A DNA stretch of 64,000 nt from Saccostrea echinata. Lineage: Eukaryota. The notes beneath the pieces are model-generated. The model worked only from the letters and a program-made list of their open reading frames with translations, was not told where the DNA came from and ran no database searches. Made by a program: the position numbers and the translations under genes. Every line of letters begins with the position of its first letter. Within the stretch, counting starts at the first letter, position 1. Below are positions 6,509 through 12,383 of this stretch, one piece after another. The DNA lies in assembly GCF_033153115.1 (NCBI RefSeq), contig NW_026889752.1:2604001-2668000 (forward strand), given 5' to 3'.

Positions 6509-6555
6509 GTAGTAAAAAAGTGACTCCCATCAAGCCACGAACCCCGTTTTCACTT

Positions 6556-6665
6556 AGATCCGACACTAATTTAGTGTTTCGGCGGTGTGATAACAGGCCA
6601 AGCAATAAATAGATATTCTATACTAATTATAATTAGTTATATAAGTCCGCCATCATCAGGAATCC
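6556..6665 (-). ncRNA. Type I hammerhead ribozyme (copy A, 3' pLTR)
   Basis: Reverse complement of the motif at 9857-9966. Confidence 0.85.
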
Positions 6666-6924
6666 ACTTATATATATCAATATTGTATATTCATTTTATT
6701 TGTTTTATTATATACCGGTATGTTCTTTTTAAATAGTAGAACCGGTAAGGGAATTTCCCAAGGTCACGTAATGTTTAAATAATAAACACAGATGAAAGTT
6801 GTTTGTGTAAATAAATATGCAAGAAAGCGATAATTTGTTAACTGTCTCTGACTGAGATATGTCAGTAAATGATATGGTTGATTACATTGTAATTGACCAG
6901 CAAGTGAGGCTTTACTAACTTTTA

Positions 6925-8853
6925 TTAAAGTTTAGAACTTGTTAGGAGATCTCCTAAACTCCTGTGTTTTTTATATGCAATAATTGGTTTGTCTTTGAAT
7001 ATATCTTTGAGTTCGGGCTCTCTTGATAGAGTGTGCCAGTATTTTAGCAATTTCTTTTTGATATTGCTAATGGCTGGGTTGTATTTTGTAACCATGACCA
7101 ATGGTATATCAGAATTACTGTTAACTTTCTTTTTTTGATTTAAATGGTCTCTTTTGTAGTTTTCTAGAACATTGTTCATTGAACTGTTAATCTCATTTTC
7201 ATTATATCCTCTTTTCAACAGAGAAAATTTGAACTTCTCGATCGCATTGTGAAAAATATTAGAATCGCTAGTATTGCGTAAATGACGAATGATTTCGCCT
7301 TTAATAATTCCCTTGAAAACAGAAGGGCTATGTGCACTATTGCGTTCCAGATACTGGAAAGTATTAGTAGGTTTTATGAAAGTTTTGACATCAAGAATTC
7401 CTTCTAATTCAAACCTTTCTCCCTTAAATAGGGTGATGTCAAGGAAGTTCATTTCTTTGTCAGAAATTTCATATGTGAATTTTAAAAGAGGATGATGTGA
7501 ATTTGCTATTTGGAAAAATTGATGAATTTCATCCATTTCCCCATGATAGATTATAAATCCATCATCTCGATATCGACCGTGATAAACAATATTATGTTGA
7601 AATGGAAATTTGTTAAGAATTTCCGAAGTGACTTCATACATTCTGATATCGCACACTTCAGGACTGCATTTTGAGCCCATTGCGCAGCCTATAATTTGTT
7701 TATATTTCTTAGAATTAAATTCAAAGACATTATTTTCTAATATTGTTTGTAACAACCACAGAGGATCATCTGTAGGTGGCGAAGGAATTTTAAATTCTCC
7801 TTTGTTGAATTTAGAGTATGCTTCACTGACAGCTGTGAGTAATTCGTTGAACTGCATATTTGTATACAGGGATGTTACATCATAACTGACCATTATGCAT
7901 TCTGCTTGCGGTCTAAGTTTTTCTATTTTTATTATGAAATCAGAGCTATCTCTGATGTAAGTGGATTGTGTTTTGACTATTGGTATTAGGAAGTAATCAA
8001 CATATTGGCTGATTCGTTCCGTCGCCGACCCGCATTGCGAGATAATAGGTCGTGCCGGGCAAATGATTTCTTGATTGTAGTGGCCCTGTTCTTTGATAAG
8101 ATCAAACATCGTCTGATCTAATTTGTGAAGTTTAGGTAGTAAGTATAATCTACCTATTCGTGGATACGTAATATCCATTAAAAATCTATATGTAACTTTA
8201 TCTAGATACCCATTTGCCTTAAGTTCATTGATTTTATTTTCAATATTCCTTTGGAGCAATGATAAATCAAAATCGTCAATTATTTCGTAATATTTAGTGT
8301 TCAATTGGCGATCGCCCTCCTTAATATAATCGTGTTTGTTCATAACAACACATATGTTGTTTTTGTCTGCCTTTTTAATTACAATATCGTGGCGATATCG
8401 TAACTGGTTAAGTGCTCTTCTCTCAAGTTGAGATAAATTATCAGAGCATTTTTTTATCTGAATTGAGGAAAGTTCAAGTTTGGTCTTATCGATGTAGGTT
8501 TCAAGTGCACCAATCATCTTAGGTGGTTCATATCCACTCTTTGTGTAGAAAGGATGAATCTCATCGTTATTAGTCTTGAAATTGAACTTACATCTCATTT
8601 TACGTGCAAGTTCATCAAAATCTTTGAGTAAGTCGTTTTTTGCGACTTTTGTCGAAGGTGTTGGGATGAATTTCAGCCCTTTTGCTAATAATAAGTATTC
8701 ACTATCTGTTAACTTGTTTTTGGTCAGATTGAATACATGTTCTCTTGCATAAAGAACATTGGAGTAGAACTTTCTATTTTTGCGGGCTTTGTATTTCATT
8801 GCCCTAATAGATCGTTTTCTTCTTTTGATGTTTCGATCGAAACGACGTGCCAT
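6925..8853 (-). CDS. PLE reverse transcriptase, 642 aa, no endonuclease domain
   Basis: Motifs RPIIS, SYDVTSLYTNM, NNVFEFN..YKQIIGCAMGS, RYRDDG, LKFT..NFLD, KPT..QYL...SAH and KRGY. Ends at AYKKHRSLGDLLTSSKL followed by TAA TAA. Confidence 0.95.
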   Translation of the reverse strand: MARRFDRNIKRRKRSIRAMKYKARKNRKFYSNVLYAREHVFNLTKNKLTDSEYLLLAKGLKFIPTPSTKVAKNDLLKDFDELARKMRCKFNFKTNNDEIHPFYTKSGYEPPKMIGALETYIDKTKLELSSIQIKKCSDNLSQLERRALNQLRYRHDIVIKKADKNNICVVMNKHDYIKEGDRQLNTKYYEIIDDFDLSLLQRNIENKINELKANGYLDKVTYRFLMDITYPRIGRLYLLPKLHKLDQTMFDLIKEQGHYNQEIICPARPIISQCGSATERISQYVDYFLIPIVKTQSTYIRDSSDFIIKIEKLRPQAECIMVSYDVTSLYTNMQFNELLTAVSEAYSKFNKGEFKIPSPPTDDPLWLLQTILENNVFEFNSKKYKQIIGCAMGSKCSPEVCDIRMYEVTSEILNKFPFQHNIVYHGRYRDDGFIIYHGEMDEIHQFFQIANSHHPLLKFTYEISDKEMNFLDITLFKGERFELEGILDVKTFIKPTNTFQYLERNSAHSPSVFKGIIKGEIIRHLRNTSDSNIFHNAIEKFKFSLLKRGYNENEINSSMNNVLENYKRDHLNQKKKVNSNSDIPLVMVTKYNPAISNIKKKLLKYWHTLSREPELKDIFKDKPIIAYKKHRSLGDLLTSSKL

Positions 8854-8925
8854 TCTGTTGGCTGTGTATGTGAAAATGGTAGTAAAAAAGTGACTCCCAT
8901 CAAGCCACGAACCCCGTTTTCACTT

Positions 8926-10038: not shown

Positions 10039-11967
10039 ATGGCACGTCGTTTCGATCGAAACATCAAAAGAAGAAAACGATCTATTAGGGCAATGAAATA
10101 CAAAGCCCGCAAAAATAGAAAGTTCTACTCCAATGTTCTTTATGCAAGAGAACATGTATTCAATCTGACCAAAAACAAGTTAACAGATAGTGAATACTTA
10201 TTATTAGCAAAAGGGCTGAAATTCATCCCAACACCTTCGACAAAAGTCGCAAAAAACGACTTACTCAAAGATTTTGATGAACTTGCACGTAAAATGAGAT
10301 GTAAGTTCAATTTCAAGACTAATAACGATGAGATTCATCCTTTCTACACAAAGAGTGGATATGAACCACCTAAGATGATTGGTGCACTTGAAACCTACAT
10401 CGATAAGACCAAACTTGAACTTTCCTCAATTCAGATAAAAAAATGCTCTGATAATTTATCTCAACTTGAGAGAAGAGCACTTAACCAGTTACGATATCGC
10501 CACGATATTGTAATTAAAAAGGCAGACAAAAACAACATATGTGTTGTTATGAACAAACACGATTATATTAAGGAGGGCGATCGCCAATTGAACACTAAAT
10601 ATTACGAAATAATTGACGATTTTGATTTATCATTGCTCCAAAGGAATATTGAAAATAAAATCAATGAACTTAAGGCAAATGGGTATCTAGATAAAGTTAC
10701 ATATAGATTTTTAATGGATATTACGTATCCACGAATAGGTAGATTATACTTACTACCTAAACTTCACAAATTAGATCAGACGATGTTTGATCTTATCAAA
10801 GAACAGGGCCACTACAATCAAGAAATCATTTGCCCGGCACGACCTATTATCTCGCAATGCGGGTCGGCGACGGAACGAATCAGCCAATATGTTGATTACT
10901 TCCTAATACCAATAGTCAAAACACAATCCACTTACATCAGAGATAGCTCTGATTTCATAATAAAAATAGAAAAACTTAGACCGCAAGCAGAATGCATAAT
11001 GGTCAGTTATGATGTAACATCCCTGTATACAAATATGCAGTTCAACGAATTACTCACAGCTGTCAGTGAAGCATACTCTAAATTCAACAAAGGAGAATTT
11101 AAAATTCCTTCGCCACCTACAGATGATCTTCTGTGGTTGTTACAAACAATATTAGAAAATAATGTCTTTGAATTTAATTCTAAGAAATATAAACAAATTA
11201 TAGGCTGCGCAATGGGCTCAAAATGCAGTCCTGAAGTGTGCGATATCAGAATGTATGAAGTCACTTCGGAAATTCTTAACAAATTTCCATTTCAACATAA
11301 TATTGTTTATCACGGTCGATATCGAGATGATGGATTTATAATCTATCATGGGGAAATGGATGAAATTCATCAATTTTTCCAAATAGCAAATTCACATCAT
11401 CCTCTTTTAAAATTCACATATGAAATTTCTGACAAAGAAATGAACTTCCTTGACATCACCCTATTTAAGGGAGAAAGGTTTGAATTAGAAGGAATTCTTG
11501 ATGTCAAAACTTTCATAAAACCTACTAATACTTTCCAGTATCTGGAACGCAATAGTGCACATAGCCCTTCTGTTTTCAAGGGAATTATTAAAGGCGAAAT
11601 CATTCGTCATTTACGCAATACTAGCGATTCTAATATTTTTCACAATGCGATCGAGAAGTTCAAATTTTCTCTGTTGAAAAGAGGATATAATGAAAATGAG
11701 ATTAACAGTTCAATGAACAATGTTCTAGAAAACTACAAAAGAGACCATTTAAATCAAAAAAAGAAAGTTAACAGTAATTCTGATATACCATTGGTCATGG
11801 TTACAAAATACAACCCAGCCATTAGCAATATCAAAAAGAAATTGCTAAAATACTGGCACACTCTATCAAGAGAGCCCGAACTCAAAGATATATTCAAAGA
11901 CAAACCAATTATTGCATATAAAAAACACAGGAGTTTAGGAGATCTCCTAACAAGTTCTAAACTTTAA
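10039..11967 (+). CDS. PLE reverse transcriptase, 642 aa, no endonuclease domain
   Basis: Same protein as copy A except DDLLW versus DDPLW. Arg/Lys-rich N-terminus. Confidence 0.95.
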   Translation: MARRFDRNIKRRKRSIRAMKYKARKNRKFYSNVLYAREHVFNLTKNKLTDSEYLLLAKGLKFIPTPSTKVAKNDLLKDFDELARKMRCKFNFKTNNDEIHPFYTKSGYEPPKMIGALETYIDKTKLELSSIQIKKCSDNLSQLERRALNQLRYRHDIVIKKADKNNICVVMNKHDYIKEGDRQLNTKYYEIIDDFDLSLLQRNIENKINELKANGYLDKVTYRFLMDITYPRIGRLYLLPKLHKLDQTMFDLIKEQGHYNQEIICPARPIISQCGSATERISQYVDYFLIPIVKTQSTYIRDSSDFIIKIEKLRPQAECIMVSYDVTSLYTNMQFNELLTAVSEAYSKFNKGEFKIPSPPTDDLLWLLQTILENNVFEFNSKKYKQIIGCAMGSKCSPEVCDIRMYEVTSEILNKFPFQHNIVYHGRYRDDGFIIYHGEMDEIHQFFQIANSHHPLLKFTYEISDKEMNFLDITLFKGERFELEGILDVKTFIKPTNTFQYLERNSAHSPSVFKGIIKGEIIRHLRNTSDSNIFHNAIEKFKFSLLKRGYNENEINSSMNNVLENYKRDHLNQKKKVNSNSDIPLVMVTKYNPAISNIKKKLLKYWHTLSREPELKDIFKDKPIIAYKKHRSLGDLLTSSKL

Positions 11968-12226
11968 TAAAAGTTAGTAAAGCCTCACTTGCTGGTCAAT
12001 TACAATGTAATCAACCATATCATTTACTGACATATCTCAGTCAGAGACAGTTAACAAATTATCGCTTTCTTGCATATTTATTTACACAAACAACTTTCAT
12101 CTGTGTTTATTATTTAAACATTACGTGACCTTGGGAAATTCCCTTACCGGTTCTACTATTTAAAAAGAACACACCGGTATATAATAAAACAAATAAAATG
12201 AATATACAATATTGATATATATAAGT

Positions 12227-12336
12227 GGATTCCTGATGATGGCGGACTTATATAACTAATTATAATTAGTATAGAATATCTATTTATTGCTTGGCCTGTT
12301 ATCACACCGCCGAAACACTAAATTAGTGTCGGATCT
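12227..12336 (+). ncRNA. Type I hammerhead ribozyme (copy B, 3' pLTR), predicted cleavage after 12330
   Basis: Identical to 9857-9966 at an offset of 2370. Confidence 0.88.
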
Positions 12337-12383
12337 AAGTGAAAACGGGGTTCGTGGCTTGATGGGAGTCACTTTTTTACTAC

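Follow-up and report, generated by a model that had tools for sequence, protein, structure and literature searches.

This study analysed a 64,000-nt stretch of the Saccostrea echinata genome (contig NW_026889752.1, positions 2,604,001 to 2,668,000 of the forward strand; hereafter the window), in which positions 6509-12383 consist of two inverted arms of one Penelope-like element (PLE), with the 5' ends meeting centrally and the 3' ends pointing outward. The insertion is real, very young and two-armed in a head-to-head layout, and it carries a reverse transcriptase (RT) and a putative hammerhead ribozyme without an endonuclease (EN). The locus is probably the product of one recent retrotransposition of this EN-less PLE, in which the two 3'-OH ends of a chromosomal break each primed complementary DNA (cDNA). 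Twin priming is well supported at the family level. A first-pass annotation of the same DNA had proposed that each 3'-OH of a break primed its own cDNA, that the products were end-joined, and that the element thereby spreads by healing breaks; the first two parts agree with the start site, arms and joins seen across the family, whereas spread by the healing of spontaneous breaks has not been established, given that the genome offers ample sources of a nuclease able to act in trans.

Structure of the two-armed locus

The full element, found at other loci, measures 3655 nt and contains two open reading frames (ORFs), and the 2370-nt unit of the window is its 5'-truncated, RT-only form. Positions within the full element are referred to as full-length positions, and the features of the window are as follows.

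6509-8878, minus strand: left arm, outer 2370-nt unit (full-length 1286-3655); its 3' end ...ACTAC meets the left flank at 6508/6509
6555-6666, minus strand: hammerhead motif of the left arm outer unit
6925-8853, minus strand: left arm RT ORF, intact, 642 aa, encoding a PLE-type RT without an endonuclease domain
8879-9587, minus strand: left arm 709-nt 3'-terminal piece (full-length 2947-3655); its junction to the outer unit, ACTAC joined to CATTTTCAC, is private to the locus
8925-9036, minus strand: hammerhead motif of the 709-nt piece
9588-9655, minus strand: extra base at 9588 (A in sense, not in the element there) and 67-nt 3'-terminal piece at 9589-9655 (full-length 3589-3655)
9656-9661, no strand: 6-nt filler AGTCCT between the two 5' ends
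9662-10013, plus strand: right arm 352-nt 3'-terminal piece (full-length 3304-3655)
9856-9967, plus strand: hammerhead motif of the right arm inner piece
10014-12383, plus strand: right arm, outer 2370-nt unit (full-length 1286-3655); ...ACTAC meets the right flank at 12383/12384
10039-11967, plus strand: right arm RT ORF, intact, 642 aa
12226-12337, plus strand: type-I hammerhead motif of the right arm outer unit; predicted cut after 12330, 53 nt before the element end

A repeat search of positions 5500-13500 returned an inverted repeat of 2722 nt per copy (6509-9230 versus 9662-12383) with a gap of 431 nt, together with direct repeats at a spacing of 2370 nt inside each arm, so that each arm is a partial tandem. 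Since the RT ORF lies on the minus strand on the left and on the plus strand on the right, the sense 3' ends of both arms face the flanks; the inverted repeat and the ORF strands thus bear out the earlier description of two copies with outward-facing 3' ends. Read in sense, the left arm runs from the 67-nt piece (9655-9589) through the extra A and the 709-nt piece (9587-8879) into the 2370-nt unit (8878-6509), and the right arm runs from the 352-nt piece directly into its own 2370-nt unit. The inner ends had been placed at 9587 and 9662. The right end is accurate, whereas the left arm continues past 9587 by the extra A and the 67-nt piece, which may represent an abortive re-initiation at the RT start site. 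The linker at 9656-9661 was recovered as described, as filler between the 5' ends.

The two arms are 99.9% identical, with mismatches at 3 of 2722 positions (6720, 7763 and 9090). Full-length position 3444 reads T in both left pieces and C in both right pieces, which argues for two template molecules rather than for one arm having been copied from the other; position 2401 also differs between the arms.

Two-armed copies across the family

A search of the host genome (923 Mb, 425 contigs) revealed a family of about 25 loci at 96-100% identity. Mapping the full element onto all fetched loci of the family identified two arms at no fewer than 13 of these loci, with 13 in the head-to-head layout and none in the tail-to-tail layout (binomial p = 2.4e-4). 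Two outward 3' ends, which the first-pass annotation had suggested scoring across genomic copies, are therefore not rare.

Clear two-armed loci (13): the window, C3:11.2M, C33 array, C33:0.56M, C36, C14, C58:5.08M, C16:17.27M, C52, C29:23.4M, C29:6.58M, C28 and C1
Complex loci with inverted pieces (2): C23:15.6M and C58:0.97M
Single-armed loci: about 8
Loci cut by the fetched stretch: 2

The arms of one locus share most of their differences from the reference unit (20 at C14, 11 at C36, 14 at C3:11.2M and 32 at C58), so they derive from one source in one event, and the structures of the two arms differ at most loci, so one arm is not a copy of the other. The arms at C58 have since diverged by 64 differences in 2078 nt (3%), so two-armed structures are old and real. 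The inner joins are end-joining-like: among the 16 mapped head-to-head loci, 14 have arms that are separated by 0-11 nt of filler or overlap by 1-3 nt, and the two remaining ones have longer fillers (212 nt at C14 and 46 nt at C52). Very short 3'-terminal pieces of 16-221 nt recur at inner ends. With partial tandems (pseudo-long terminal repeats, pseudo-LTRs) and an inverted 5'-truncated partner both present, the family displays the organisation of PLEs. The layout also extends beyond the family: in a sister family with 53% RT identity, a (-,+) head-to-head pair lies at C51:4350285-4356652 with an ORF1 homologue (ORF1 being the upstream ORF of the full element) in each copy, indicating that the arrangement is clade-wide.

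Additional observations were made on individual copies. The same 5' truncation points recur at unrelated loci, namely full-length 1492 twice and 651/653 twice (C16:17.27M and C52:8.39M; C47 and C14), which suggests preferred RNA 5' ends or RT stop sites. On contig C33 (6603525-6633078), seven full 3655-nt units and a partial one stand in tandem at 99.6-100% identity to the reference unit, itself one of the seven, and the array terminates in an inverted arm of two 3'-terminal pieces (221 nt and 1573 nt); the array could be a source of multimeric RNA. At C46:9831549-9849887, about 16 kb of inserted DNA interrupts one copy, and the two parts overlap by 8 nt (element positions 2468-2475), which looks like the target-site duplication (TSD) of a later insertion. 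The copies at C19:395787-397156 and C23:13328007-13329056 have a common 5' breakpoint (position 2284) and a common adjoining flank; they represent a single insertion, duplicated afterwards together with the DNA around it.

A fixed start site at the 3' junctions

At all loci, every arm has the 3' end ...ACTAC. At both outer boundaries, in the window and at every other two-armed locus, this end is followed by 0-5 nt that match the start of a next unit (ATGTT). Across 40 junctions, from which ordinary unit-to-unit joins were excluded, the base after ACTAC was A at 30 of 40 (p = 1.4e-7), the match extended to AT at 17 of 40 (p = 7.4e-7) and to ATG at 9 of 40 (p = 4.1e-8), all far above the expectation from composition. 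The A is absent from the target at the right junction of C29 and at the left junctions of C28 and C14, and the A at window position 9588 is absent from the donor position. The extra A at these sites is thus element-derived, which implies that the template RNA ran past the CUAC start site and was multimeric, read-through or circular. Combined, these results indicate that the RT starts at, or a few nucleotides beyond, a fixed internal site.

Target sites and flanking sequence

The left flanks of four two-armed loci lie in repeats with paralogues of 85-100% identity, and empty sites were rebuilt from these paralogous repeats rather than from alleles.

C29:6.58M: 39-bp deletion, no TSD
C36: 2-bp deletion, no TSD
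C28: deletion of about 0-1 bp inside an A run, no TSD
C14: left flank agrees with the paralogues as far as the junction; no right flank located within 250 bp

Scoring other copies for TSDs and target deletions, as the first-pass annotation had advised, therefore gave a TSD at none of the three rebuilt sites and deletions of about 0, 2 and 39 bp. TSDs that had been called by eye (TTCAC at C29 and AAAT at C28) were refuted by the rebuilt sites, and no shared target motif is evident among the three.

At the window, the flank paralogues on contig C32 are 68-69% identical and place both flanks in one repeated unit in the same order and orientation, with nothing finer to be read from them. By appearance, positions 5745-6508 and 12384-12800 hold decayed minus-strand coding sequence of one repeated unit; the translated fragments resemble by eye a tyrosine-recombinase/DIRS-like element, and a Pfam search of the flanking ORF fragments gave no match. 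Elsewhere in the genome, an EN-bearing PLE pair is neighboured by two minus-strand ORFs of 332 and 308 aa, in which a DIRS-like recombinase and RT/RNase H can be suspected by eye. Window positions 12485-12530, at a distance of 100 nt from the right junction, comprise a (TTTTA)n run and then a poly-T tract. None of the fetched loci of the family contains TTAGGG or CCCTAA arrays, and all family loci are internal to large contigs.

Coding capacity of the element

In the full element, ORF1 (183-881, 232 aa from the first ATG) is separated by a 429-nt spacer from the RT ORF (1311-3239), which is followed by a 416-nt 3' region. Over residues 11-642, the latter being its last residue, the RT aligns with a 921-aa RT-GIY-YIG ORF from the host genome (32% identity, E 2e-89), and the RT ORF stops exactly where this EN-bearing relative runs on for 152 aa into a cysteine-rich linker and the GIY-YIG domain. 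The homology along the whole length, including the N-terminal conserved region, identifies a PLE-type RT. Pfam returned only RVT_1 for the RT, at 25.1 bits and thus under the curated cut-off of 29.6, and a PDB sequence search with the RT gave chance matches only. No Pfam endonuclease domain was matched in the element and no GIY...YIG pattern occurs in the six frames of its 3655 nt, so that the description of the element as endonuclease-less is upheld by the domain content, the missing motif and the ORF end at the domain boundary.

RT homologues of about 645 aa with the same C-terminal end point occur in Saccostrea, Pinctada and Mytilus, and longer relatives are extended N-terminally, not C-terminally. 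The host genome contains at least 10 sister EN-less families, which are 45-59% identical and all have an ORF1 homologue upstream. Among public proteins, P0100, P0103 and P0118 (841-947 aa) carry a long helical extension on the N-terminal side of the RT, in one fused protein, and end in ...RAKL without an endonuclease.

For ORF1, structure prediction from a 13-sequence alignment gave a core of three long helices at high confidence, followed by a predicted disordered basic tail. No significant family match was obtained for ORF1, and Foldseek returned no match at E <= 0.001. The ideas that ORF1 is a hidden nuclease or corresponds to the N-terminal domain of single-ORF PLEs were rejected, as BLASTP was not significant and Foldseek gave no match; nothing in ORF1 as modelled suggests a nuclease.

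A putative hammerhead ribozyme in the 3' region

The hammerhead that the first-pass annotation had ascribed to the element occurs as a motif four times in the window, with covariation among relatives, and is not matched by Rfam, which returned no hammerhead in either an E-value scan of 8 kb or a lax scan of 211 nt. In sense, the motif consists of helix I, CUGAUGA, helix II, GAAA, helix III, GUC and the other strand of helix I. In helix II, five G-C-rich pairs close a large loop, an additional U follows the core, and helix III has six pairs. Four diverged sister families show the same architecture in their 3' regions; there, helices I and III change compensatorily and the large loop is placed in helix II or helix III depending on the family. 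The core is complete across the sister families, with a change at position 7 only, the one core position known to be free to vary in natural hammerheads. Because of this covariation, the motif was retained despite the Rfam result. A script requiring the full motif recovered it from 6 of 8 family sequences, against 1 of 2000 shuffles. When the region was folded by minimum free energy, the result was no better than for shuffles, a comparison that is uninformative for a ribozyme with large loops. Overall, the terminal repeat region of the family contains a putative hammerhead ribozyme, as is expected of a PLE.

Between the predicted hammerhead cut and the element end (window positions 12331-12383), the stretch CGTGGCT(T)GATGGG is kept across sister families that are 53-58% identical in the RT, and in the window family and the 58% family it is followed by CAC and a T run. 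Judged by its conservation, the stretch is a candidate module for RT recognition and start.

Proposed mechanism and alternative explanations

In the proposed mechanism, a chromosomal break would offer two 3'-OH ends, each of which would prime cDNA on element RNA at the fixed ...CUAC site, 53 nt past the hammerhead cut, and the template would extend beyond this site as a multimeric, read-through or circular RNA. At the window, the template would be an RT-only RNA species of 2370 nt, beginning at a point 25 nt upstream of the start codon of the RT. On reaching the end of the RNA, the RT would re-start at the start site and so generate the partial tandems (left: 709 and 67 nt, in that order; right: 352 nt), and the two cDNA 5' sides would be end-joined with the 6-nt filler. 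The anatomy of the locus, its recurrence across the family, the common start site, the lack of an endonuclease and the missing TSDs at three sister loci are direct results; that both ends were primed, what kind of RNA served as template and that the RT re-initiated are inferred.

Several observations weigh against this mechanism. Both window arms carry the identical junction of the 3' end to full-length 1286, which a whole-genome pattern search found once per arm and nowhere else, and a 5' end at 1286 is seen at no other locus of the family. Such a shared junction would call for either an unusual RNA species or a source copy that the assembly lacks, and it would also be expected if one arm had been copied from the other. 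The empty-site evidence comprises three loci, all rebuilt via paralogous repeats, and the right flank of C14 was not located in the paralogues. The structure of the insertion in the window is taken from the assembly. Lastly, the genome is rich in potential nicking enzymes: GIY-YIG (PF01541) gave 1175 candidate matches, and all 150 of those that were scored lie above the cut-off. In a count made from the table of matches, neighbouring GIY-YIG matches form about 28 (-,+) pairs and no (+,-) pairs, so the head-to-head layout is general in the genome.

Since the 1286 junction is private and present in both arms, independent priming is tenable only if the template RNA itself ended there. The simplest reading is that a single RNA species began at 1286 and that two of its molecules served as templates, each re-used after RT run-off; the alternative is a source copy missing from the assembly. 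Canonical splicing was ruled out as the origin of the junction because the boundaries are not GT...AG.

The abundance of GIY-YIG domains bears on who made the break. The locus may be a twin-primed product for which the break was supplied in trans by the GIY-YIG endonuclease of resident EN-bearing PLEs, the family then being a parasite of their nicks; this is a possible but less likely origin. Many of the GIY-YIG matches lie in long open frames of 700-950 aa, both EN-bearing PLEs that were fetched have inverted partners, and one inspected head-to-head insertion of this type lacks an obvious TSD. Additionally, the EN-bearing PLE protein of Anolis was shown in vitro to cut both strands and to extend them (Frangieh et al. 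2024, PMC11167929). Against a supply in trans, the EN-less clade is old and diversified, with its 10 or more families in the genome and its relatives in Saccostrea, Pinctada and Mytilus, and its RT has been kept intact, so that the family does more than borrow a complete RT-EN protein. No common motif is evident among the three rebuilt target sites, and they lack the 8-10-bp TSDs that accompany the inverted arrangement in EN-bearing PLEs of Adineta vaga (Arkhipova et al. 2013, PMC3846280). A break that was not made by the element is slightly favoured over a GIY-YIG nuclease in trans, and it is put forward tentatively. The broadest version of the argument remains doubtful: that a diversified, autonomous bivalve clade of EN-less, two-ORF PLEs with a hammerhead spreads inside chromosomes without any nuclease, with the telomerase-related RT, positioned at the fixed start site of a multimeric or circular RNA, extending both 3' ends of spontaneous double-strand breaks and the cell joining both cDNAs.

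The private junction would also suit a second explanation, in which only one end was primed and the second arm arose by self-priming of the cDNA (snap-back) or when the first arm was duplicated in inverted form at a later time. Self-priming has been proposed for PLE palindromes (PMC3846280), and short snap-back pieces are found at the inner ends of two sister loci, namely the 46-nt filler at C52, an inverted copy of the adjacent arm, and 36 nt at C6. At the window, however, the right arm stops exactly at the RT start site and then continues into unrelated flank rather than into inverted left flank, the filler has no pairing to the turn-around point, and the arms differ at three sites, one of which is changed in both tandem pieces of each arm. 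As arm structures differ at other loci as well, priming from a single end is improbable.

An assembly fold-back artefact or two unrelated adjacent insertions are highly improbable, since, for all the 99.9% identity of the arms, the difficulty of assembling palindromes and the known trouble that PLE structures cause in assemblies (PMC8557442), the window arms are not identical, the centre is asymmetric (a one-sided stretch of 431 nt), 12 or more further loci repeat the layout with breakpoints of their own, in some cases with arms that have diverged by 3%, and the private junction in both arms speaks against two unrelated events.

Significance and comparison with known systems

The origin of the tandem and inverted structures of PLEs is an open question, for which the literature credits the properties of the GIY-YIG endonuclease. 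If the breaks used by the family are not made in trans, the architecture would depend on the RT and its RNA alone, and the family would provide a natural example of the patching of chromosome breaks by an RT related to telomerase. If the breaks are made in trans, the family would instead represent an RT-encoding element living off the nuclease of another element.

An inverted 5'-truncated partner is a typical PLE feature (PMC8557442, PMC3846280). Like the canonical EN-bearing PLEs (Penelope/Poseidon, Neptune as well as Nematis), the family described here has a hammerhead motif near the 3' end, pseudo-LTRs and such a partner (PMC8557442, PMC3846280), and as in the EN-bearing PLE of Anolis, in which the RT initiates internally, the RT start lies a short way past the hammerhead cut (PMC11167929). 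Unlike the canonical elements, the family lacks the linker and the GIY-YIG domain and has a separate ORF1; it has no 30-40-bp 'tail', and a TSD was not seen at the three rebuilt sites. Its hammerhead motif also differs from theirs in having a long stable helix III and large loops and in not being called by Rfam.

The family shares with Athena and Coprina, going by their description in PMC8557442, the lack of an endonuclease, the presence of an ORF1 upstream and a hammerhead close to the 3' end, whereas it differs from them in not being telomeric and in having a 3' end without reverse-complement telomeric repeats. EN-deficient PLEs were said not to share the tandem/inverted organisation (PMC3846280), which the present family does have. 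EN-less families away from telomeres have already been mentioned, namely MjPLE01 of kuruma shrimp and PLE-X of Chara and Selaginella (PMC8557442); these arose inside EN-bearing clades, and the present family differs from them in its bivalve host and two-ORF layout. Compared with them, no site-specific target such as 28S rDNA is apparent for the family.

Endonuclease-independent L1 insertion and L1 twin priming resemble the events considered here in their use of free DNA 3' ends, the lack of TSDs, the small deletions and the two primings. L1 twin priming yields one inverted 5' segment of a single copy, whereas both arms of the present insertions start at a defined internal RNA site, so that each has a complete 3' end.

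Overall, the head-to-head layout and the idea of two primings are already known for PLEs. The unusual part is an EN-less family that shows the full tandem and inverted organisation inside chromosomes, without telomeric repeats.

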